DNA of 64,000 nucleotides from positions 5,704,001 to 5,768,000 of the forward strand of contig OX337229.1 of assembly GCA_946965045.2 (NCBI GenBank). The letters are read 5' to 3'. This document shows, in pieces, positions 5,161-53,192 of the stretch. Numbering within the stretch: position 1 is the stretch's first letter; each line of letters begins with the position of its first letter. Source of the DNA: Epithemia pelagica (Eukaryota; Protista; Bacillariophyta). The notes under the pieces are model-generated. The model saw only the letters and a list, made by a program, of their open reading frames with translations, was not told the origin of the DNA and did not search any database. A program made the translations under genes and the position numbers.

Positions 5161-7089
5161 ATGCGTTGTCCTCTCTCATTTGGTCTATCGTTCGGGAAAC
5201 GACTCTGTCGGCGACAAACTGCATCCGCGTGTAAGACTTTACCGGCGTGGCTCTTGCGGAGAAGCAATCGATTGCAAGGTATTTGGAGGGCATTCTCCTC
5301 CTCGGTTCCGTCCTTTGTAGGTTCATCCTTGGAGGCCAACTTTGCTTCTCCCTCCAAGCAAGACATTGCGGAATTATCAAGCCTTTTGGACCATGAAACG
5401 GGCAGTATAATGTCCTCGATTGGTGACAATGCCGAAAACAACGAAACCAAGGATTCGGTTTCGCTGATGTTGGATCGCTACAACAAGGACTGGATGAATC
5501 ATTATGTCGGACAATCCCAAGTCGTCTTGCGACCCAGAACGGTGGACCAAGTTGCTCGCATTCTCACCTATTGTGCCTCGCAGCGATTGCCTTTGGTTCC
5601 CCAAGGTGGCAATACCGGTTTGGTCGGTGGTTCCGTTGCCACCGGTCCTAAAGAACTCGTCCTTTCCCTGGAACGGCTCAATCAAATCTATCATGTCGAT
5701 GCCGTCACGGGCCTCTTGTATTGTCAAGCGGGTTGTATCTTGAACGACTTGCAAGAGCATTGTGCAAACCATCACAATTTGCTGGTTCCCCTCGATTTGG
5801 GCGCCAAGGGAACCTGTCAAATTGGTGGCAATGTCGCCACCAATGCTGGGGGTCCCTATTATTATCGCTATGGATCCTTGGCTGCCAATCTGGTGGGTCT
5901 TCAAGTCGTATGGCCCAATGGCGGTGCTGGAAGTCCCAACCAGCCGGAGGCGTCGGTCGTCAATCTCAATTTTTCTCCCACCACCAACCAAAACAACGAC
6001 AAGGAGGAGAAGAAGGACGACGACGCCGACGAATCGGCCAATGTGTCGGAACCAACTACGACCAATACTACCACAACAAGAACAAGTCTTTTTCATTCCA
6101 ATTTAAAAGACAATACAGGATACAAACTGAGTCAGCTCATGATTGGTTCCGAAGGTACGTTGGGAGTCATTACCGGTGTGGCACTCAAATGTCCACCTCT
6201 TCCCTTCAGTCGTCAGGCCGCATTTTTGGCCTGTCATTCCTTTGATCATGTCGTGCAACTGATTCACTTGGCCAAACAGGAATTGGGAGAAATTTTGGCC
6301 GCCTTTGAATGGATGGATCAAACCATTGTCGAATTGATTCAACAGACGCATCCCCATGTACGGGTTCCCGTCACCATGGAAGAACAGGCGGACGACACGG
6401 ATGGTGCTGCGGAACGGCCGTATCCGCATTCCATTTTGCTGGAAACCCATGGATCCTGCGAGGAACATGACATGGAAAAACTGGATGGGTTCTTGACCAA
6501 GGCCATGGAATCCTCCTCACACCACCAACAACAAGAAGGCGGTGACCCGATTGTGGCCAATGGTGTCATGGCCCAAGATTTGTCTCAATTGCACGAGTTT
6601 TGGAATCTTCGAGAATTGGCCGGTCCCTCCATTGTCGAATTGGGCTATGGATACAAGTACGATGTGTCGTTGCCTGTGAGTGAATTTGCCGAGTTTGGCC
6701 GGGACGTCCAACAACATGTCCAAGATACGTTGAAACTGAAACGAGATGATGACGACGACACGACGAATGGTTTGGTGGAACAAGGACCAGCGTTGGTTTG
6801 TACCAATTGGGGTCATGTGTTGGATGGCAATTTGCATTTGAATTTTACGACTCCGGGAGAGTTTCACGTCAATGACAAGGTACTGCAGTGTTTGGAACCC
6901 TACGTCTTTGATCAAGTCCTGGAACGGGGAGGGTCCATTTCGGCCGAACATGGCATTGGTCAAATGAAACGTCCGTACCTGTCTCGAGTGCATGATCCAG
7001 CGGTACTGGCAACCATGCGAGCCTTGAAACAAGTGTTTGATCCAGTGGGGATTTTGAATCCACACAAGGTGCTTCCACCAGCAACATGA
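5161..7089 (+). CDS. D2HGDH: D-2-hydroxyglutarate dehydrogenase-like FAD-linked oxidase with mitochondrial-type presequence
   Basis: PQGGNTGLVGGS, DLGAKGTCQIGGNVATNAGG, IGSEGTLGVIT, YKYDVSLP, WGHVLDGNLHLN, GSISAEHGIGQMK, FDPVGILNPHK. Confidence 0.92.
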   Translation: MRCPLSFGLSFGKRLCRRQTASACKTLPAWLLRRSNRLQGIWRAFSSSVPSFVGSSLEANFASPSKQDIAELSSLLDHETGSIMSSIGDNAENNETKDSVSLMLDRYNKDWMNHYVGQSQVVLRPRTVDQVARILTYCASQRLPLVPQGGNTGLVGGSVATGPKELVLSLERLNQIYHVDAVTGLLYCQAGCILNDLQEHCANHHNLLVPLDLGAKGTCQIGGNVATNAGGPYYYRYGSLAANLVGLQVVWPNGGAGSPNQPEASVVNLNFSPTTNQNNDKEEKKDDDADESANVSEPTTTNTTTTRTSLFHSNLKDNTGYKLSQLMIGSEGTLGVITGVALKCPPLPFSRQAAFLACHSFDHVVQLIHLAKQELGEILAAFEWMDQTIVELIQQTHPHVRVPVTMEEQADDTDGAAERPYPHSILLETHGSCEEHDMEKLDGFLTKAMESSSHHQQQEGGDPIVANGVMAQDLSQLHEFWNLRELAGPSIVELGYGYKYDVSLPVSEFAEFGRDVQQHVQDTLKLKRDDDDDTTNGLVEQGPALVCTNWGHVLDGNLHLNFTTPGEFHVNDKVLQCLEPYVFDQVLERGGSISAEHGIGQMKRPYLSRVHDPAVLATMRALKQVFDPVGILNPHKVLPPAT

Positions 7090-21915: not shown

Positions 21916-24900
21916 TTAGTCGGACAAGTCTTCGGAAAATCGTCCTTGGGCAATCATTTGTCGAAGGTACGCCGAGGCTTGTTCCACGGACAGAGTGCCT
22001 TGGTGTTGAATGAGACGAACCACTTCTGCTTCCACGGCGGCTCCAAAGCTTCGGGCTCCACCGCACAAATAGGTATGACCACCGTGTTGAAAATGGTCCC
22101 ACAATTGGGCCTCCTTGGTTCGGAAGGACTCGGTGACGTTGCCACAGGACCATGTAATTTCCGATGGTTGCAGTACCTCGTTCTTGGTTCCTGGAGGACT
22201 CGTCGGAGTGGTACGACCCAGGGTGGAAGAAATGTGAGCTTCGGTAATCACTTGCGCGGACAGACACTCCTCCATCAAATCTTGGTACACCACATCATCG
22301 GTATCGCGAAATCCGACAAAGACCAAGGCCTTACCAAACGTTACGCCTTGTTGTTGATGAAGCAAGAGTCGTTCTTCCAAAAAATCTCGAACCGGTGCGA
22401 CACCGCATCCTCCCGCAATCAAGACAACCGAAGTTTGTGGATCACGAGGCAATCGAAAGGATGGATTGGACCGAATGGCTCCGGCAATCGTGGAACCGCC
22501 GTCGTCCCCGGCGGCGGGTCTCAAATGATTCATGTACGATGTACAAATTCCTTCCCGTAAAACTCCACGGCTCGTCAAGTATCGAATGGGACGATACGTG
22601 AGGAGTAAGGTTGGTTTTTTCTTCTTCTTGTTCTTGTTGTTGGTTCCTCCGGCTGAACTGTTGCTATTGAGGGGACTGGATGCAATGGAATAATACCGCG
22701 GTTGCAAGGGTGGAAGATTGTACAAGACATCCTCCAAAGATAATCTTGCTCCCAGTTCCAACGCGAGATCCAAGGTGGTCCGTCGTGGCACGGCCACTTG
22801 TTCCTTGTAATGGTCAATCACCGTGGCTCTGGCAGTCGGTGGTACACTGGCTGTCATGGATCGGACAAATTGGGGTGACGGTGTGGCTCCCAAATCGACA
22901 CAAAAACTCAAGGTTTCGTACAAGGTCAAGCCGTATGGGTGAGGGTATACTGGCTTTTTCTTTTTCTTGGTTGTCGTTGAGACTGTCGTCGTCTCGTCGT
23001 TGGTCTCTTCTTCCGTGTCGGCTACAAAGACGGCATGGGGCTCGACTTGCAAATAATTGAGATAGGCCTCCACCACACAATCGGCATTGCGGGGATACAA
23101 CACAAAGTGATCGCCTGCCTCATACAAACAAGGCACTGAATCACTATTCGCAGTAGTCGCCGCCTCTTCGGTACTATCGAGAAGAAGATCAATTTCCAAC
23201 TCGGTCAATCCATTGCCGACTCCATTGCGATTCAACAGGGTTCGATTGGAAATTCGAAATCGCTTGGTTCCCTTTTGATACCAATCGGGAATGACAGATA
23301 ACAAATCATATCGTGGTGGAGCCGTCTCGTTGTCCTTGGGATTGGCGAGCCGCAACTGGAGCATGGGATATTTGGACGAGACCATTCGTTGTCCCGAACG
23401 AGCGCCTGGACAGGGCACTGTATTGTTCGGTGGGAGTAGAGTCGTCGCGTCGGGCGAGGACGACCGGGGTGGAGCCAGTGTCTCTTTTGTTGTTGTTGTC
23501 CTTGTCGTCCTCGTTGTGGCGGTTGCGTTCGGAGGGAGTAATCCTGACTCGGGCATGTCCTCCTCGGGCGCCGGTTCGGTTCCCTCCAATCCGGGTGATG
23601 GTTGTGGTGATTCCAACCGTGTTTTCAGATAGTCGAGGACCAGTTCTTGCCATTGATCAAAGTCGTCGTCGATACAATCTCCATCGTCCCCCAAGGTCAA
23701 GGGCAAACAACTCGTTCCCCCCAAGAGTCTTTCGAATCGCTCTTGCATCGTCTTGCTCACGACATTGTAATGATTGGGATGCGCCTTTTGATTACCCAAT
23801 CCAAAAATGGCAAATTCCAATGTTGTCGTATTGGTGTGGTGGTCCCGCAACCAGCTACGGCCTTGTTCGGGGTTTGTGGTGGTCAAGGTCTTCACATCCT
23901 CATAAAAGGCCTGGGCCGGTTCGGGAGGTTCTCCCACACCGGCCGTGCTGACCAAAAACAAGTACAACGTGTTCTTGTCGTTGTGGTTGGATTCCACGAG
24001 GAGTTGGGACAGCGAGGTATAGTCTCCCAGAGATTGGACACGCACCGGCAGTACAGAAGTGCCGTCCCATTGTTCTTGTTGAATGGCCTCGGCCAATTGG
24101 GTGGCAAACAATTGTGCGGTACCGCCCGTCGTGGCATACAAGATGCAGACGTGGTACAGTGGAGAAACAGACGACGAAGATGACGACAATGGAGAGGACG
24201 AGGAGGAGGCGCTTGGTTCGGGAATGGTGCCCGGTGCGGTCTCTGGTTCCATGGTCGAGTCCTGCGTTTCGTTATTGTTGTCGTGATCGGAACAATCATG
24301 GTCGTAGTTGGAGTGAAGGTATTGAATCACTCGGGCTTGCCATTGATCAAAGTCATCGTCCAAACAATCTCCATCGTCTCCCAACGCCAGGGGCAAGAAA
24401 CAGCCACTCGTTATTGTCGTGTTGTCATGTCGTCCTTGTCTTGGTCGTTGCTGCGGCGGGTCCATGCTTCGAGACGAGCCTGCAAGGTCTTGCCCACCAC
24501 ATTGTAATGATTGGGATGCGCCTTTTGATTGCCCAATCCAAAAATGGCAAATTGGAGGGGAAGAATCTGGGTGTTTTGGTGGTTGTGGTTGGTGCTTGTA
24601 TTCCCAGAATTCAAGACGGTCTGGTAAAAGGCCTGGACCGGTTCGGGCGGTTCTCCGACCCCCGCTGTACTCACGAGAAAGAAGGAAAGGTTGACCGTTG
24701 TTGCTGCTGTTGCTTGGTCTTGTTGTTCGTCCACCAATTGTTGGAGGGATGTATAGTCTCCCAGAGACTTGACCACGACAATGGGAGGGTGGTGGTCGTG
24801 GTCGTCCTTGTCATTCTGGAATTGTTCTTGTTGTTCTTGCAGGGCATCCGCCAATTGGGTCGCAAAGAGTTGTGCCGTCCCACCGGTCGTGGCATAATAA

Positions 24901-25271
24901 ATCCAAATGCGCGGCCGGACGAGTAATGATGGTGGAGTCCTTGTGGTGGTTCTTGTGGAACAGGACCTGCTGGTGGATGGGTGACGAAAGCGACTCCCAA
25001 CCACCGCACCAACCACACTACTCATGTCCGGGTGGTGGAAGTAGTTGCTGTTGTGATACCGCCACAAGGAGTGGTGGTACGATGACGAACGAAGGAGGAA
25101 TCGAAAGGGCCATTCCGTCTTTGTGGTCCAGCCTTGGATCCGTCGGGAAACGGAGGAGGATGATGATACTGATGGTTTCTTTCTGCTTGCTTGTTTCATT
25201 TGGATGGAGGAGAAACAAGAGACGAGTGCCCGTGGAGGACGCCGCACCAGGAAGGAGAATGAGGACACCAT
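21916..25271 (-). CDS. Diflavin (CPR/NOS-reductase-like) oxidoreductase with two flavodoxin domains plus FAD/NAD(P)H module; apparent 1-nt frameshift at about 24411-24465
   Basis: FMN motifs occur twice (YATTGGTAQLFA, STAGVGEPP, FGLGNQKAHPNHYN, LGDDGDC.DDDFDQW); FAD motifs RYYSIASS and GICTSYM; NAD motifs IAGGCGVAP and YLCGGA; C-terminus RFSEDLSD. FMN domain 1 is split across ORFs 24411-25271 and 21916-24465. Confidence 0.9.
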
Positions 25272-26247
25272 GATTGCGACTGGTGAGAACTGTCGTCTTC
25301 TCTTTGTTCTTCACTTCAACCGTTTTGGATCCACAACGACAACGACGACGAGATCCTTCATCCAGCGTCACAAAACAAAAAGGTTAATCCTTTTTTCTCC
25401 TGGCGGATACTTTGGATCGAATACTCGTATTAGGATTGTCTCCAACAGAGATCCAATCTTCTCGTCCTTTGACCATGAGTGAGAATTTCACATACGCAAG
25501 TGTGCGAATGCCAAACTCTCTAGTAGAGAATAGCGACTGATGCGTTTTCTTGAGAGATCTTTGACAGAACACTCAACAGAGAGAGATCCGAGAATCCAAG
25601 ACGAAGTCGAAGCGATGTTCCTTGCGGCTGTTCTGTGGATGTGAAGATGTTCGTTGGCTGCCGGAAGAGGCAAAGGAGGAGAAGAATGTACCGACCCAAA
25701 GATTGCGATTCGGATTTGGACGAGAAGATTTGCTCATTCGCATTCCCCTTCTTGAGTCCCGGATTACTGAGAAGCAGTCGTATCGACCTTCAATATTCGT
25801 GCTTTCCTAGATTGAACTTAAATGTTAATCGCGCTAATGAGTCGCTTTTATTTGAAAATCATCCTTTACAGCCAGGCCTCAAGGATGACGACATCCAATG
25901 TTGATGTCGCATATCTGTCGCATTCGCTTCGGGGCGCTGGCCCCAAACCCAAAGATATGATGGGTTCGCATTTGGCATGCAACCAACAAAAAGATATCGT
26001 TTCTTCTTCTTCTTCTTCTTCTTCTTGTGTCTTCGCTTCGTCGTCGTCGAGACAAGCTCTCTCACCACCAGAAGAATACTTTTGAGAGTTGACAGAGACG
26101 TCATTCGTCACACGGTAGTATCGTCGTGCTTTGGTTCCTGCATCGAGTCAAAAGACACACTCTCTCAGTTTCATCCAACGAGAAGGAAACGAAACCACAA
26201 AACACCATTGCCTCGCTGGCACAATCAAGGATTCCACCCACACCACC

Positions 26248-28242
26248 ATGATTGCCGCATCCTCCACTCGGTTCCTGCTCCATCCGTTCTCCGCACAAGG
26301 TCGTCGTCGTGCATGTGCCGTCGTCGCCCAACAGTTGCGTCGTGGTTCGGTCCGAACACTGTCGTCGTCGGTCCTCTTCTTGGGCCGGAATGGCCACCAC
26401 CGCCAGTCGCTGACAAGACACGTGCCGGCAATTGCTTCGTCCTCCTCCAGTGGCTGCTTCTTTTCGACTCAACCCGCCACTTCGACTTCGAACACTACAA
26501 GCAATCATATTTTTGTGCCCGACATGATGTGTCGTCAATGCGAACAAACGGCCGATCATGTGGCCTGTACCAGTCAAGGTGTGCGTGGCAAATCCAGTGA
26601 AACCTCCGCCATGCAAGATGCCCTCCTCGACAGTATCAAGTCCTTGTCCATTTGGTGCATGGCGGCGCGACAAGAACAACAAGAACCAAACGACGTGGTT
26701 GCTCCCGATTTGCTGGAACAAGCCAATGTGTTGACACTCAAGGCCACCTTTTCCACCTTGACCAATGTCAATTTTTCCTCTTCCCGGATTGCCGACTATA
26801 TTCGACAAGTCGAAGACGTCAAGGTCCAAGTCCGCGACGCCGTCTTGGCCGCGTCTCCTGGCGATAGCAATAGCAGTAGTGTCACGGAACAAGACTATGG
26901 GGCCTTGGCCTCGTTGGATTTGCGACACATGGATGATACCTATTTGGAAGAATATGGTCATTCCTTTTCGGGTTTGGCCGTTCGATCGGCCGTCATGAAT
27001 CATCCGGATGCCTTTTCCCTCAATGAAGTGGGAACCTATGGTCTCAAGGGCGCGTGTGCCTATGCCACGCATGTCTATCAATTGGTTGGAAAAACGGATC
27101 CGACCATTATGGCAGCCATTCATGAAATTTTTGCCAAACTCGCGCGTCCGCAAGCCGACATGGATGGCTTGTTGGCCAATGCCCTACGGGTGGGAGAGGT
27201 GAATGGTCAAATTTTGGCCGCCCTCGATGCCGCCCATGCCGAACAATTGGGTATTCCCGAACCGACTCCCGTGCGAACCTCGGCTGTGGCCGGCAAGGCC
27301 ATTTTGGTCTCGGGTCACGATTTGAATGATTTGCATCACTTGTTGCAACAAACGGCCGGTACTGGTGTCAATGTCTATACGCATGGATAAATGTTACCAG
27401 CCCATGCCTATCCGAAATTGCGACAGTATTCTCATTTGGCTGGCAATTATGGCACGGCCTGGCAAAATCAAAAGTTTGAATTTGCCACCGTTCCCGGTCC
27501 CATTGTCGTCACGACCAATTGTATTTTGGAACCCCGTCGCGTGTACAAGGATCGCTTGTATTCCATGAATGAAGTTGGTGTCGACGGGGTCCAACATATT
27601 GGCTCGGCCAAGGACTTTTCGGCCGTGATTGAGCAAGCTCAACAACTCAAGGGCTTTCCCCGTACCATTGAACCGGCCACCTTTCATACGACGGGCTTTA
27701 ATCATCGGGCCGTCGTGCCCTTGGCGAACCAGGTGATTGAAGCGGCGCAATCGGGTGCCTTGTCTCGCATTTTTTTGATTGGCGGATGCGATGGCAGTCA
27801 ATGGGATCGATCCTACTTTACCACGCTGACCGAAGAAACACCGAGCGATTCCCTAATTCTCACCTTGGGGTGTGCCAAGAATCGCATTATTCACAATCCC
27901 AAACTCGAAGCCGCCACCTTGGCCAATGGATTGCCTCGTGTCTTGGATATGGGACAATGCAACGATTCCTATTCCGCCATTGTCGTGGCCACCGAATTGG
28001 CCAAGGCCTTGAAGTGTACCGTCAATGACTTGCCCCTCTCCTTGGCCCTGAGTCATTTGGAACAAAAGGCGGCCGCCGTCTTTTTCACCTTGCTGTCCAT
28101 GGGTGTCAAAAATATTCGACTGGGACCCAGTTTGCCCGCCTATCTCACACCGGCCGTCCTCGACTTGCTCGTCCAAGAATACAATGTTCAAGGATTGGGA
28201 GATCCCAAGGAGGACCTTCAAGCCATGATGCAAGGGAAATAA
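26248..28242 (+). CDS. hcp: Hybrid-cluster protein (HCP/prismane) with presequence; in-frame TAA at 27388-27390
   Basis: MMCRQCEQT..C..QGV(R)GK, YGLKGACAYATH, ILVSGHDL, VYTHG*MLPAHAYP, VTTNC, IGGCDG, TLGCAK, DMGQCNDSYSAI, LEQKAAAVFFTLL, NIRLGPSLP. The two ORFs are contiguous and in frame. Confidence 0.95.
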
Positions 28243-28314
28243 GAACAAAAACGAAAAACCAACAAGAAGAAATTACGTCGTCGACTCTATGAAGGAACCA
28301 TTTCTATTCTACTA

Positions 28315-29033
28315 CTCCCTCCTGCTCGAAATTATCGCAACAAGTTACAAAAAATGACGTAACTTCTCACGCGCTGGCCCTTTAGCGCTAAAAATTATAT
28401 AGATCGCTAGCTTATGTTTAGACTCAAATTTCCATGTATAATTTATATGTTCCATCTCACAATCCTGGAGAGCTACATGGAACTAAAAGAGGCTAAAAAA
28501 GCAACCCAAACTTTGGCGTACCGGTTCTGGCCCCCCAGGTGCACCCAAGCCATGGCACCCTCCAGCCAGGCCCGCGAGGGGGTAAAGTACAAAGAGTTGC
28601 TGGCTAATGACTGTGGACGTTCTATGGACATTAATCTATCCTTCCCCATCTAAATGGCACCTTGCCAGAGGTGTTTTGTCGAACGTCGCCAAAATTTTTG
28701 GTACTCATCGATCCATCATAAGTAGGGAATCAGAGCGCGCACAGCAATCGCATGCGGTGGACTTAATTAATTCCCCCATAATTTCATCCATCGCGCGCGC
28801 GCGTGGTCGGATTCCTAAGTGTTCTTCACCTACTGTTATCTAAGCGGTTAAAAGTGTCAAGCGAATAAAGGATAGTTAGGTTTTGGCGCGTGTCACGTTG
28901 AATGTTCATCTTTAAAATTCGACTCCGAATGAGCCGGCCATCCTCCTGTAGAAATGTACCAGGGCCTACGAGAGCTTTTTGTGCGACTACTATGACTAAA
29001 AAACTTGTTGCAATAATTTCGAGCAGGAGGGAG
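28315..29033. mobile_element. Non-autonomous Tc1/mariner (Stowaway-like) MITE, 719 bp
   Basis: 32-bp TIRs CTCCCTCCTGCTCGAAATTAT(C/T)GCAACAAGTT with 1 mismatch, flanked by TA at 28313-28314 and 29034-29035; AT-richer interior with no convincing ORF. Confidence 0.88.
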
Positions 29034-29521
29034 TAGTAGATACGCCCATTGTATATACAATCTATGCGTTCGAGTATAATAGCTGGTTGGGAAGTCCCTA
29101 CCACGACCCACCGCCACATGTCTTTCTTGTGGGTCTTGGGTACAAACCGTGTGTCCCTGTGTTTGTTGTTGTTGTTTGTGGTAGATCCATTCCAGTTGGT
29201 ATTGGCATTTGGTACGGAGTATTTGGTACTCCTATGCCTGGTTGAAAAAAGGGAATAGGTAGTCTATATTCTTCCCTTAGCGGCGATAGCCTTTAAGTCG
29301 CGTATAATATATGTGACACCACTTGGTGTCACTAGGACATCAACGTGCGTACTCGTCATTCATCCGAAATCCTCGTCATCGCGATTCCCGATCCTTCTTC
29401 ATCAAAAAAGACACACCCGCATTGAAAGTGTTTGATTCCATCCATTCGACATTGGACCGCAAGAACAGCCATTGACGCAACAACATAACCATACTCAGTC
29501 ATTACTACCTACTTCCACACC

Positions 29522-48245: not shown

Positions 48246-51200
48246 TCACCAGCCCATGATTTTCTTTCGAGAGGTGGTGAAGAGGTTGACGTCAAGAGGT
48301 TTTGTGAAGCAATCCCCAAGTTGAGCATCGGTGGCAATGGCTTTCATGCGGATGCCGTTGGGGCCATCATGTAGTTTTGAGCGGAACCAATGATACTTGA
48401 CGCCGATGTGTTTTGATCGAGGTGTCATGCGGGGAGGATCCTTGGTAGCTAGTTTTAGAGCGGCCTGGTTGTCTTCCCAAATGGTAGTAATACTGGTAGT
48501 TCCTGGTTGTGCAAGATGGAGTTGTTTGGTCATTTTCTGTAGTTGTCGTTGTAAAGGAAGTAGGGTGCGCATGCTGGTACTTGCGGCTATATATTCAGCC
48601 TCCATGGTAGATAGAGCAATTTCGGTCTGTAGTTTACTTGACCAAGTGACGGGAGATCCACCTAGGGAGATAAGGAACCCGGTTCGAGATCGGACACTGG
48701 AAGGATCTTGAGCATCTTCGTTTCCCCAAATTCCGGCGAAATCAGCGTCGACGTAGCAGTCAAGGTTGAGATCTTTTGAGGGCTTAAGTATCAATCCCTT
48801 GTCGTGCGTGCCCTGAAGATACCTTCCGATTCGTTTCAAAGCTTCACCGTGTGTGCAGCGTGGATCGTTGCTAAAGCGAGCAGCTTGATGGATTGCAAAC
48901 GCACAATCGGGCCTTGTGTTGTTACCAAGATAGAGCAGCATGCCAACAACGGAACGGTAGTTGAATGATTCGTTGAGTGGGGGTTTGTGTGTATCCTTCC
49001 CGAGTGTTCGTGTGGCTGGAGTTTGTTTGGGGCAGCTGTCAGTCAATCCAAGAGCGGCGATGATACTCTTTGTCAGATGTGGTTGCGTCAGGACCATGCT
49101 ACCATCATCTTGGCGTGTGATTTGAACTCCAAGGTATGTTGGAAGGTCTCCCAAGTGGTCAAAGTCCATTTGGAGTTGGGTCAAACCAGCTAACAGACGA
49201 TCCACGGTTTCTTGATCTTTTCCACAGATGATTGCGTCGTCGACGTAGGTCACCATAATACAGCCATCCTGACAAAACAAGCAGGGATCATTGCCATCGG
49301 TAGTGAGTCCAAGTTCCTTGAGTCGTGCCTTTAGATAGTTGTACCAAAGACGTGGAGCACGACAGTCGCCGTACAGACTCTTGTGGACTTGCAAAACTTT
49401 GTCGCCATGTCCTTCACCATAGCCGTGAGGCAGGTTCACGTAAATTGGTTCCGGAAGACTGGATTGGACGAATGCGTTTTTGAAATCAATGGATGCTGTT
49501 GCCAAATCGTGTTGTAACGCGAGAATCAACAATAAACGAACGGCGGGCCAGTCGATCACCGGAGCAAATGTGTCTTCTTTGTCAAAGGTAGCTTTTTGCT
49601 GGTCTCCTCGAACGACGAGACGGGCTTTGTATCGTGAGAGAGTCCCATCGGGCAGTCGCTTTCGCTTCAAGGTCCACATGCTGTCAACGATTTCCTTTCC
49701 GTTTGCAGCCCTGCGTGGGACAAGAGTGAATGTTCCTTTTTCCTCCAGTTCGTCGAGTTCGCGATCCATGGCAATGAACCATTTTTCTTGTTCTTCCTGG
49801 TCCATGTGTCGCACGTCGAAGTATGAAGGGTTATCGGCATCAAAAGACTTGGAAGCAAAATATCGTGGGTCCCAGTCGTCAATAATGCCATGAGTGGCAC
49901 TTGATTGCAGCTGGTACGAACGGTCATGGAAGTAACTGGGATGTTCGTGGTCTGGATTGCTGCAGTGGTCCCAATTGAGGTGATTGGCATATGAGGCAAA
50001 GCTGGACGGGTCGGTATTGATGGCTTGAGTGAAGAAGAAGCGGTGCATGTCGTTTGAAAAGGTGTTGAAACGACGGAGACTGTGGTGGTTGCTCCATTCG
50101 CTGGTTGGGAGATCGAAGGTGACATGTCGCTCCGGATCGGGAAAACGACGAGGTGCGGCACGTTGGCGACGAGAACGACGAGGACCGGAATCCAACTCTG
50201 GCTCGCCCAATTCAACTGGCGGTTCCAACTCTGGCTCGCCCAATTCAACTGGCGGTTCCAACTCTGGCTCGCCCAAGTCAACTGGCGGTTCCAACTCTGG
50301 CTCGCCCAATTCAACTGGAGGCATAGGTGTACTGGGAGTACGTGGTGTACGTGGTGGAGTAGAAGGAGGGTTGGGAGAAGCTGGCGCTGGTTGTGGATCA
50401 ATGCGTGGAGTTCTCTCGCCCTCGTCGGCAATAGGAGGATTGGCGGCGACAGATCGGGAAGGGGGCGCCCAGGAAGAATCAAGTGGAGGCAAGTCCCCGT
50501 CGATGTCCGAGCAGTGATCTTCAAGATAGGTGTCGCGAGTAAAGAAATCCGGGAGGTCAATCGGACCCAAAGGAGCTTCCCAAGAACTGTGCACGGTGTG
50601 GAAAAGCTCGTCGTGGACGACATGGAACTGAGGGCTAATGTGGTTGGTAGTCAAATTCCGAATAAGTCCAATGGTGGTGGAGTGTTGCGTCGAAAAACCG
50701 AGAAATTGACCTTGTCGAGCTCGGGGAGACCATTTCGGAACCTTCTTGCCATCTTGGAGACGTGGGTCCAACACATACGAAGGACAACCCCAAACTCGTA
50801 AGCGACGTAATTGGGAACAATGTTCTTTCACGCCAGTGAACAATTCCATGGGTGAGAGAGTGGAGTCTTCACGTGGTACGTGATTATAGATCCAAACGGC
50901 ATAGTCGAGTGCCATGGGCCAAAGGTTTGGAGAAAAGCCGTCGGGCCAATGCAAGTGGCAATGGATCATCATCGTTCGGGCCATACTTGTAACGGTTTGG
51001 ATGGCGCGTTCAGCACCACCGTTCTGATGATGAGCGCCAACACCGGACACAGTATGAAGGGGTTTGACTTCGAGATGGTCTGCCTGTAACGATCGTTCAA
51101 AGGCATCACTAGTAAGAATGCCGTTGTCGGAGTGGTAACGTCGGATGGTGCGGCCGACTTGACTTGCAAACGTTTCGAGGGAGAATTTCGATCGGATGGT

Positions 51201-53192
51201 GTCGCTTCCGCCGAGTGAGACTTGATGGTATACAAAGATGGCACGGGAAGCATGATCGAAAAAGAGAGTTCCACCACAAAAACGATGTTCGGCGCGCTCA
51301 CGTCCTTTGGTGTGATACAAACGTCCACGAACAGAGGACTCGTAGTGGTCGATGGACACCAAATCTCCAGGTTCCAATTTCGAAGGGTCATGAGGGATGT
51401 GCCCGGCATCAGAACGTGGTCGCTTGACGGTAGACTTGGTGGGACGACGTTTGGCTTTACCCAACAAACAGGCTCGACATTTTGGAAGTGGACAAGTAAG
51501 ACAACCAGTGCCTTTCGGTTTGAGACAAGAGTCGGGGCTGGTCTCATGACAGTGGTAGAGGTTTTGGATCTGGCGCATGTTCAAGTGTCCTAATCGTTGG
51601 TGATCCAAGAGTAAATGTTTCTGAGCGGTAGTCAAGTTCTCATTGCTTGTTGAGAGAACGTCATCAGGGTCAACAACTTGTTGGTTCAAGGCATCAGCGA
51701 GAGTAGTTCGAGGCGTGTCATGAGGCTTGGTACAAAGAGGACAACGGCACCAGTTGGTAGTGCTGCAACGACATTGTGGGTCATTGGCATGACTATGGAC
51801 CTTTGTTGAGACGTGAACATTTTTGGCTTTAACCAAAGGGAGGTTTACGTTGTGGTCGATTGGAACGGTTAGTCGCCCACCAATGGCGTCAGTTTTGATA
51901 CTGGCATAAACATCATGATTGCTCTCGAAACTTGGGAATCGTCGATCCAAGTTAAGGTAATCGGCACAAACTTGTGGGGAACAGAGCCGACTTCCAGCGG
52001 CTTTGCAAAGATTGGCAGGGAATGTCCAGCGAATGAGGTCTCCATTTTCGCTGATTGCATCGTACGCTACAATTCCAGCACCAATGATGGGAAACTTGTT
52101 TTCGTTAGCCGCAGTGGACATCGAACCAAAATTGCCGTAAGTTATTTCAACGAAGTCGTCAGAGGACATCGTGAGTCCGTGAGATGCTCCAGTATCTAAG
52201 ATGATGTTCAAAAGAGGGTCTGCTGATGAACAAGCTTGGGGGTCTTCAATAAACATTGTCGGGTCAAGACGGATGTTGAAAAGTTTCGAATTTGTTGTCG
52301 GAGTCAAGCGGTGTGAACGAATCAGATTACTGAAATCATCTCCGAGTTCTTCGAGAGTCAGATCATCAGGGTGAGGAGCAAGGTCGATGTCAGGTCGGGT
52401 TGAAAAAGGTGCTAAGTCAAACAGAGTCTCGCTGCAGAAGGCGCTAAAATGTGGGCCGTATCCAGTCAAGTGAAGATAACGTGGCCGTGGTACAAAAGGT
52501 GTTTCCTCATCATCAAAACCAAGGGTGTCAAGAACTGATTTCCAATCAAAAGTCTTCAAGGAAGGAGTCAACATCAGTTCAAAAAGGTACGTAGAGACAG
52601 TATCGTCGTCAAGGCCATCAATGTAAGAGTTCCAAATCTTGAGGTGTCGTTTTGATAAACGATATTTGCGTCGCATCTCGCCCCGTACCCGAAAGGAAGG
52701 AGTGAACGACTGTAAAGAAAAAGGGTATGTACTGGAAGCAAATCGAACGGAGCCAGTGTGGATGCTGGTCAAAGATGCGGAAGAAAGGTTAACAACGCGG
52801 TCAAGGAGCATTAAACGACAATCAAACCCACTTGGAGGGAAGGCGTGCGGTAGTAAGATGTCAGAGTCGATACGATCCAAGTGACGCTGAAGGGTACCCA
52901 ACGTAGGAAGAGGAACAAGGAAACCAGTAACACCCAACAAGGAAGCGTTGCAACAACTCGAAAGAACAAGCTACAGGTAGAAAAGGGAACCAAGCCAACG
53001 TCGATGTAAAGTTAAAGGGGGAAATCGAAGTAAAACAAACAAAGTAAAACAAACCATCATGGCGGCAAACGAAAGGACGGGCCAAGACCAACAAAGCAAA
53101 CCAAAGCCAGACCAAAACAAGGGACACCACGACAGAATCTCCATGAAATCAAAGCAAGGGGCAGAAGAACACTGGAGGGATGTTCGCCCCAT
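48246..53192 (-). CDS. pol: Copia pol (PR-IN-RT-RNase H) in the -1 frame relative to gag, with one in-frame TAG at 52971-52973
   Basis: IILDTGAS; HQRLGH..CRACLLGK; SIDH/SDNG/AERAIQ; YKARLVVRG, YVDD; YVDADFAG, STMEAEY, EDNQAA, DCFTKPL. Confidence 0.95.

Follow-up and report, generated by a model that had tools for sequence, protein, structure and literature searches.

What supplies electrons to the hybrid cluster protein (HCP) of diatoms? This question is raised by a 64,000-nucleotide stretch of nuclear DNA from the diatom Epithemia pelagica (the window), which has a GC content of ~0.48 and long single-exon open reading frames (ORFs), and in which an HCP gene and the gene for a diflavin reductase stand head to head, with 976 bp from ATG to ATG, as the original prediction had described. 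In this respect the locus resembles the Hcp-Hcr system of Escherichia coli, where HCP is likewise genetically linked to an NAD(P)H flavoprotein that couples an FNR-like FAD/NAD module to a one-electron carrier, and where reduction of nitric oxide (NO) or hydroxylamine has likewise been proposed. In class II HCPs, an insert in the cysteine motif (the protrusion) matters for working with Hcr, and the partners of class I and class III HCPs were stated to be unknown in a structural paper of 2023 (PMC10502027); the view that no dedicated partner is established for the kind of HCP found here agrees with that statement.

Algal HCPs, such as HCP1-4 of Chlamydomonas and the "hydroxylamine reductase" of diatoms, are, like the protein described here, nuclear-encoded, of bacterial type and equipped for organelle targeting. 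They have been tied to nitrate, darkness and anoxia (PMC7412212, PMC8003979, PMC6787086), and reviews treat their role as unresolved (PMC7412212). The diatom HCP is listed as a hydroxylamine reductase and is absent from Parmales; it is highly expressed in Phaeodactylum tricornutum and is induced at the subsurface chlorophyll maximum in Thalassiosira nordenskioeldii (PMC10328945, PMC2945787, PMC6787086). In the co-expression literature, a single proteomics paper mentions Phatr3_J12416, the identifier of the P. tricornutum HCP. The algal HCPs of this literature have no described reductase partner, whereas the diatom genes come with a conserved neighboring reductase. Our literature search, which left most subscription papers outside its reach, found no paper that joins HCP with a diflavin reductase and, as had been anticipated, no earlier description of the pair.

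We report herein that a conserved HCP-reductase gene pair exists in diatoms, undescribed as far as we have searched. What the original prediction saw in the sequence is correct in full, and its interpretation holds in part. The locus is probably a diatom two-gene HCP system, made up of an HCP with class I cysteine spacing and a divergently transcribed soluble diflavin reductase, of which E. pelagica carries a recently disabled allele pair. The wider proposal is evenly poised in our judgment: diatoms would carry a dedicated, probably mitochondrial diflavin NAD(P)H:HCP oxidoreductase which forms with HCP an NO/hydroxylamine-reducing system, and the decay seen here would be a recent loss.

Results

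The gene pair recurs among diatoms

In the window, the HCP gene occupies positions 26248-28242 of the forward strand, with its ATG at 26248 and its final stop at 28240-28242, and consists of a single frame broken by an in-frame TAA. The reductase gene runs on the reverse strand from an ATG at 25271 to a stop at 21916-21918. The 976 bp between them (25272-26247) presumably serve as a bidirectional promoter.

At least 10 further, independent diatom loci show the same head-to-head pair. It was found on two haplotigs of Epithemia clementina (together with a second, tandem HCP), in Cylindrotheca closterium, Seminavis robusta and Fragilaria crotonensis, in the centric diatom Thalassiosira profunda, and in five metagenome loci whose sequence reaches far enough upstream (L009, L010, L011, L017 and L018), two of which, L009 and L010, are probably from one species. 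A Bacillariaceae metagenome-assembled genome, with HCP and reductase under consecutive locus tags on one contig, represents a probable further pair, and in nine additional pairs of HCP and reductase matches both partners lie on contigs of identical size. Six named taxa, including E. pelagica, thus possess the head-to-head pair, with 372-976 bp between the genes, and the link is kept in pennates, both raphid and araphid, and in a centric diatom, as the original prediction would have it. The remaining flanking genes mostly differ among the five named species, and background synteny is therefore low; the recurrent pairing is more than chance.

Not every observation favors a dedicated partnership, and several weigh against it. 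The link is broken in four loci: the HCP gene of Cyclostephanos tholiformis and the reductase gene of Stephanodiscus triporus have other neighbors, locus L003 contains an unpaired HCP with a copia element upstream, and at locus L014 a divergent reductase likewise has other neighbors. Moreover, P0304, a distant member of the reductase family, lacks an hcp neighbor, so that the family is wider than the HCP link, and for HCP4 of Chlamydomonas the suggested donor is ferredoxin (PMC8003979). It may be, then, that a common promoter, and perhaps a common stress regulon, is what unites the two genes, with the reductase serving some other mitochondrial acceptor and ferredoxin or another carrier reducing HCP; P0304 and the separation of the genes in Stephanodiscus and Cyclostephanos, where each gene is intact in one of the two genera, are as this explanation would have them. 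However, the adjacency lasts across pennate and centric diatoms while most neighbors change, no alternative acceptor gene is consistently near the pair, and the combination of an FNR-like module with a one-electron carrier mirrors the domain logic of Hcr. We regard a separate acceptor as possible but unlikely, and prefer a reductase dedicated to HCP.

The intergenic region of the window contains the 11-mer GGGTTCGCATT / AATGCGAACCC at 25962-25972, its sole copy in the 64 kb. Exact copies of GGGTTCGCATT are also present between the two genes in F. crotonensis (L021) and at metagenome locus L011; E. clementina (L002) has a copy with one mismatch, as does the sequence upstream of the unpaired HCP gene at L003, and related CCGAACCC variants occur in three other loci. 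This motif, which was chosen post hoc, is a candidate for a shared cis-element.

The two haplotigs of E. clementina differ in the state of the pair. On one (L001), a 2-nucleotide deletion at ~5409 divides the HCP-linked reductase into ORFs of 397 and 471 residues, and on the other (L002, 8331) the reductase is intact, as are all four HCP copies on the two haplotigs.

The reductase belongs to a diatom clade of its own

The reductase of the window is encoded by two overlapping ORFs of the reverse strand. ORF A (24411-25271) specifies a presequence of ~121 residues and most of flavodoxin domain 1, and ORF B (21916-24465) extends from the end of that domain to the C-terminus, ...GRFSEDLSD. Pfam recognizes Flavodoxin_1 in ORF A and, in ORF B, a second flavodoxin domain (23650-24150), FAD_binding_1 (22657-23127) and NAD_binding_1 (~21922-22422), which bears out the two tandem flavodoxin domains of the original prediction. 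As in the CPR/diflavin superfamily, which includes CysJ, NOS reductase, MTRR and NDOR1, the domains follow the order Flavodoxin_1, FAD_binding_1, NAD_binding_1, and the motifs RxYS and GGxGxAP are kept. Neither an Hcr model nor a 2Fe-2S domain was found in the reductase by the Pfam and NCBIfam profile searches.

Is it, then, simply an ordinary microsomal CPR, or an NDOR1 or MTRR orthologue, that lies beside hcp by chance? Its best PDB match is a plant-type CPR (7sux, 3e-45), followed by NOS reductase, MTRR and CysJ; its best annotated matches are also CPRs, and automatic annotation names it NADPH-ferrihemoprotein reductase. When the T. profunda orthologue was the query of an exhaustive phmmer search (9028 matches), however, a recognizable set of proteins ended in ...[ED]D[LV][SA]D, without Trp. 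In a maximum-likelihood tree of 62 diflavin proteins, all seven HCP-adjacent reductases fell into a single, long-stemmed diatom clade (support 100/100, stem 0.96), and the Trp-less family that holds this clade was split from the Trp-terminated CPR-like and CysJ/NDOR1-like proteins at 99/97. Grouping with ordinary CPR, NDOR1 or MTRR, which the original prediction had named as evidence against itself, was thus not observed, although for MTRR and NDOR1 this rests on unnamed representatives, as the tree held no source-annotated members of either and P0364 was assigned as NDOR1-like from its C-terminus. The score against the CysJ equivalog of NCBIfam was far below the cutoff of 668 (130 bits for the window and 254 bits for the T. 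profunda orthologue), and the identification as CysJ or ordinary CPR was rejected on this score and the separate clade. With the lack of a membrane anchor and of the C-terminal Trp, and with adjacency to hcp recurring in many taxa, a chance neighbor of ordinary CPR, NDOR1 or MTRR type is scarcely credible and largely refuted. The sister group, P0260, has plant CPRs as its next matches after its closest relatives.

The clade differs from CPR in several features. It ends in GRxxEDL(S/A)D, with Ser or Ala (Ser in the window) at the position of the FAD-stacking Trp of CPR. In its flavin mononucleotide (FMN) loop, STAGVGEPP, an Ala stands opposite the Tyr of TYGEGDP, the corresponding loop of CPR, and its GLGN loop carries a 2-residue insert. 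In addition, a short basic presequence replaces the membrane anchor, whereas the CPR-like proteins compared begin with hydrophobic anchors. Loss of the FAD-stacking Trp in CPR relaxes NADPH specificity; therefore, the use of NADH by this reductase is possible, to judge from its C-terminus. Distant members of the family occur outside diatoms, for example in Lapot gusevi, and P0304 is one such member.

A search of the long phmmer matches for fusions of HCP with a reductase yielded nothing but P450-CPR fusions and, from other lineages, proteins with several flavodoxin domains. According to a table footnote in the review PMC8003979, the HCP gene of Cyanophora paradoxa is fused to a "sulfite reductase" gene; if that partner is a CysJ-like flavoprotein, it would provide a gene-fusion argument for a partnership of HCP with diflavin reductases.

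The second flavodoxin domain is lineage-specific

Both flavodoxin copies of the window keep the FMN-domain motifs of the family, and together with the single domain of E. clementina they form a supported group (95/98), in which copy 1 has the longer branch. All other members of the clade that were checked have, like E. clementina, a single domain; the duplication is therefore private to the lineage of the window and outside the conserved module. The original prediction had included two FMN domains in the electron-transfer chain, and this part of it must be amended.

Tandem flavodoxin domains, three to six in number, also occur in the public diflavin-type proteins P0258, P0320 and P0345, whose loops are of the STTGxGDPP type and place them outside the HCP-linked clade. 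Multiplication of FMN domains is hence not unique to the window locus.

The HCP combines class I cysteine spacing with a class II-like sequence

The HCP gene matches Pfam Prismane (PF03063) in two pieces, at profile positions 1-237 and 239-512, and the NCBIfam model for hydroxylamine reductase (NF003658) in pieces 1-263 and 265-545, with 214+385 bits versus a cutoff of 367. The position between the pieces is missing in each case because of the in-frame TAA at 27388-27390, which replaces the Glu of the conserved sequence VYTHGEMLPAH, intact in all other diatom HCPs aligned. In an alignment with 10 intact diatom HCPs the gene proves colinear, and its THG, QKFEF, TTNC, GGCDGS, LGCAKN, GQCND and HLEQK motifs are identical to theirs. 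Within these motifs lie the residues that we take to be the His, Glu and Cys ligands of the hybrid cluster, on the basis of the Desulfovibrio vulgaris structure.

The N-terminal [4Fe-4S] motif, C-x2-C-x8-C-x5-(C), lies at 26530-26592. In the window it reads C-x2-C-x8-C-x5-R, the fourth codon (26584-26586) being CGT (Arg), and so falls one short of four cysteines. The cysteine is kept (TGT) on the other haplotype and is found in all 10 homologues, the other diatom HCPs reading GVCGK at this site. Mutation of a [4Fe-4S] cysteine impairs HCP function (PMC10502027).

By its cysteine spacing, which fits the class I pattern C-x2-C-x7/8-C-x5-C, and by a middle region of ~100 residues that is absent in class III and is present here in the full-length profile match, the protein falls into class I. 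The class II motif, C-x2-C-x11-C-x6-C, is absent, and relative to the class II HCP of E. coli (7de4) there are gaps of 3 and 1 residues; unlike that protein, therefore, the diatom HCP lacks the insert in the cysteine motif. Its overall sequence is nonetheless nearest to the E. coli protein: the closest named homologue, P0002 of E. clementina, has 7de4 as its best PDB match (5e-140), and overall similarity amounts to 471 bits to the class II HCP of E. coli versus 399 to the HCP of Desulfovibrio. The earlier assignment of a class I/III-type motif thus holds for the spacing, and for the spacing only.

Both proteins begin with basic extensions

The HCP begins with an N-terminal extension of ~92 codons (26248-26523), which precedes the mature protein and is presequence-like in composition. 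As had been noted before, the extensions of both HCP and reductase are rich in Arg and Ser and poor in acidic residues: their first 50 residues are basic and Ser/Thr-rich, with 8-9 Arg plus Lys and no Asp or Glu. In 13 other diatom HCPs the extension is 50-104 residues long and of similar character. Among 14 HCPs and 14 reductases, the N-termini were basic and almost free of acidic residues, and a strong hydrophobic core, as in a signal peptide, was looked for and found in none of them. By composition, the HCP extension looks like a mitochondrial presequence, and the two proteins are probably both located in the mitochondrion.

Both genes are disabled on both haplotype contigs

The original prediction spoke of repaired proteins, which hinted that both genes are interrupted, and this is the case. 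In the window, HCP carries the TAA (GAA to TAA) and the Cys-to-Arg substitution (TGT to CGT), and the reductase has two extra nucleotides relative to the other haplotype (24426-24427, reverse strand), which throw the sequence out of frame within flavodoxin domain 1, where ORF A gives way to ORF B. The other haplotype is represented by contig ctg1330l (L007) from the same assembly (ENA ERZ21939226) as ctg1307l, the contig of the window. It runs collinear with the window from 15003 to 35966, with 93-96% identity, and is a second haplotype or homeologue. Its HCP gene has the same TAA, with a 2-nucleotide insertion 10 nucleotides upstream of it and a 1-nucleotide deletion in the presequence. Its reductase is a single ORF of 1124 residues (P0122), to residues 1-290 of which ORF A is 91% identical, but a CAA-to-TAA change lies 10 codons before its end. 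An intact module is therefore present on neither contig.

Public gene calls over the broken HCP of the second contig (7027-9100) are antisense ORFs of 275 and 387 residues without a Pfam match. They are an annotation artefact and hide the HCP remnant from protein searches.

Could these lesions be errors of sequencing or assembly, with both genes intact in the organism? The contig names are hifiasm-like, from which a long-read assembly can be inferred, where small indels can be errors, and an apparent 2-nucleotide frameshift occurs in one E. clementina haplotig too. However, two of the lesions (GAA to TAA and TGT to CGT) are base substitutions, and the TAA is found independently on the second contig, which diverges by ~5% in substitutions across the gene. 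Moreover, ORFs of 1747, 1564, 989 and 881 residues are intact in the window. The contigs also differ by 12 indels in three flanking genes, which are intact and free of stops on both, and the length of every one of these indels is a multiple of 3; it is therefore the gene pair in particular that is damaged, and assembly quality is not at fault. Errors of this kind are a highly improbable explanation.

Two further ways of saving the frame were considered and rejected. An intron that would remove the TAA or the frameshift is contradicted by the colinearity of the residues with homologues (THG*MLPAH), and the sole GT...AG span, of ~28-30 nucleotides, would remove conserved residues. As for reassignment of the stop codon, TAA ends 6 of the 20 long ORFs, including both genes of the pair, and the sole tRNA of the window is a tRNA-Ser.

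The pattern of substitution, on the other hand, does not resemble that of a long-dead pseudogene. Between the two contigs, mature HCP has a synonymous divergence (dS) of 0.136 and a ratio of nonsynonymous to synonymous divergence (dN/dS) of 0.116, with neutrality rejected at p=2e-17, and this ratio is like the long-term value of 0.09-0.10 versus E. clementina; for the reductase, dN/dS between the contigs is 0.36. The common TAA sits in normally divergent sequence, the nearest differences being at -10, -25, +19 and +24 nucleotides. The low ratio, together with a TAA common to both contigs, counts against simple recent disablement, and a long-dead pseudogene was rejected on the dN/dS of 0.116. 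The same two features would suit a window HCP that is still made as a working protein, for example through read-through of the stop codon. Against this, TAA is an ordinary stop in the window, the 2-nucleotide insertion just upstream of the TAA on the second contig would shift the frame of the product, the window haplotype lacks one [4Fe-4S] cysteine, both reductase alleles are damaged as well, and TAA-ATG is not known to be a read-through context. A functional product is thus improbable, and a very recent loss, in which the TAA moved between haplotypes by recombination or short-tract conversion, is the most likely explanation.

Other features of the locus

A miniature inverted-repeat transposable element (MITE)-like insertion of ~720 bp (28308-29040), with 39-nucleotide terminal inverted repeats that are 97% complementary, begins 66 bp past the HCP stop. 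It is missing from the other haplotype contig, marks the window allele, and is outside the HCP/reductase module. The 64 kb also contain genes for ankyrin, copine and kelch proteins, and a Ty1/copia-type retrotransposon (RVT_2) with an intact ORF of 1564 residues at 48246-52940 (reverse strand). A copia element resembling it is the one that sits upstream of the unpaired HCP in L003.

A gene for a FAD-linked oxidase similar to GlcD/D-lactate dehydrogenase is located at 5161-7089 (forward strand), ~15 kb from the pair. A GlcD-like gene lies convergent with and directly after HCP in E. clementina (L002, 15010-17013) and F. crotonensis (L021, 9918-11204), and in S. robusta a gene with a FAD_binding_4 domain is found ~8 kb from the pair. 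In the window, as in F. crotonensis, a TRAM/LAG1 gene is close to the pair.

Discussion

The gene pair, its conservation among diatoms and its decay in E. pelagica are matters of observation; electron transfer, substrate, compartment and co-regulation we infer as follows. NAD(P)H would reduce the FAD of the reductase, which would in turn reduce FMN in the flavodoxin-like domain. FMN would then pass single electrons to the N-terminal [4Fe-4S] cluster of HCP, from which they would move on to the hybrid cluster for the reduction of NO (or hydroxylamine). Both proteins would reside in the mitochondrion and would be transcribed from the short common promoter region. The pair would thus be a functional analogue of E. 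coli Hcp-Hcr, with a CPR-type scaffold in the place of the FNR-[2Fe-2S] protein. This part of the original prediction is in agreement with the linkage, the CPR-type domains and the separate clade; the step from reductase to HCP is one that we infer.

The diatom pair also differs from the known systems. Unlike Hcr, the diatom reductase has an FMN (flavodoxin-like) domain and not a [2Fe-2S] domain, and there is no architectural homology between the two. In place of an operon, diatoms have divergent nuclear genes with organelle-type presequences. Compared with CPR, whose client is a haem protein, the putative client in diatoms is an Fe-S enzyme, and in the lineage of the window the FMN domain has been duplicated.

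HCP is widespread, and the conserved neighboring reductase is a concrete and testable candidate for its electron donor in diatoms, for which intact natural orthologues exist in C. closterium, T. profunda and F. crotonensis. The decayed copy of E. pelagica offers a natural case of loss of function, and its stop codon, common to two contigs under apparent purifying selection, presents a small evolutionary puzzle. If the proposal is true, an HCP with class I cysteine spacing would for the first time have an identified physiological electron donor in this reductase, and a major group of phytoplankton would possess an NO/hydroxylamine-reducing system, with the decay seen here marking a recent loss of that capacity. 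Such a system would bear on what diatoms do with NO, nitrite and hydroxylamine in the dark or at low oxygen, and possibly on their production of nitrous oxide (N2O).

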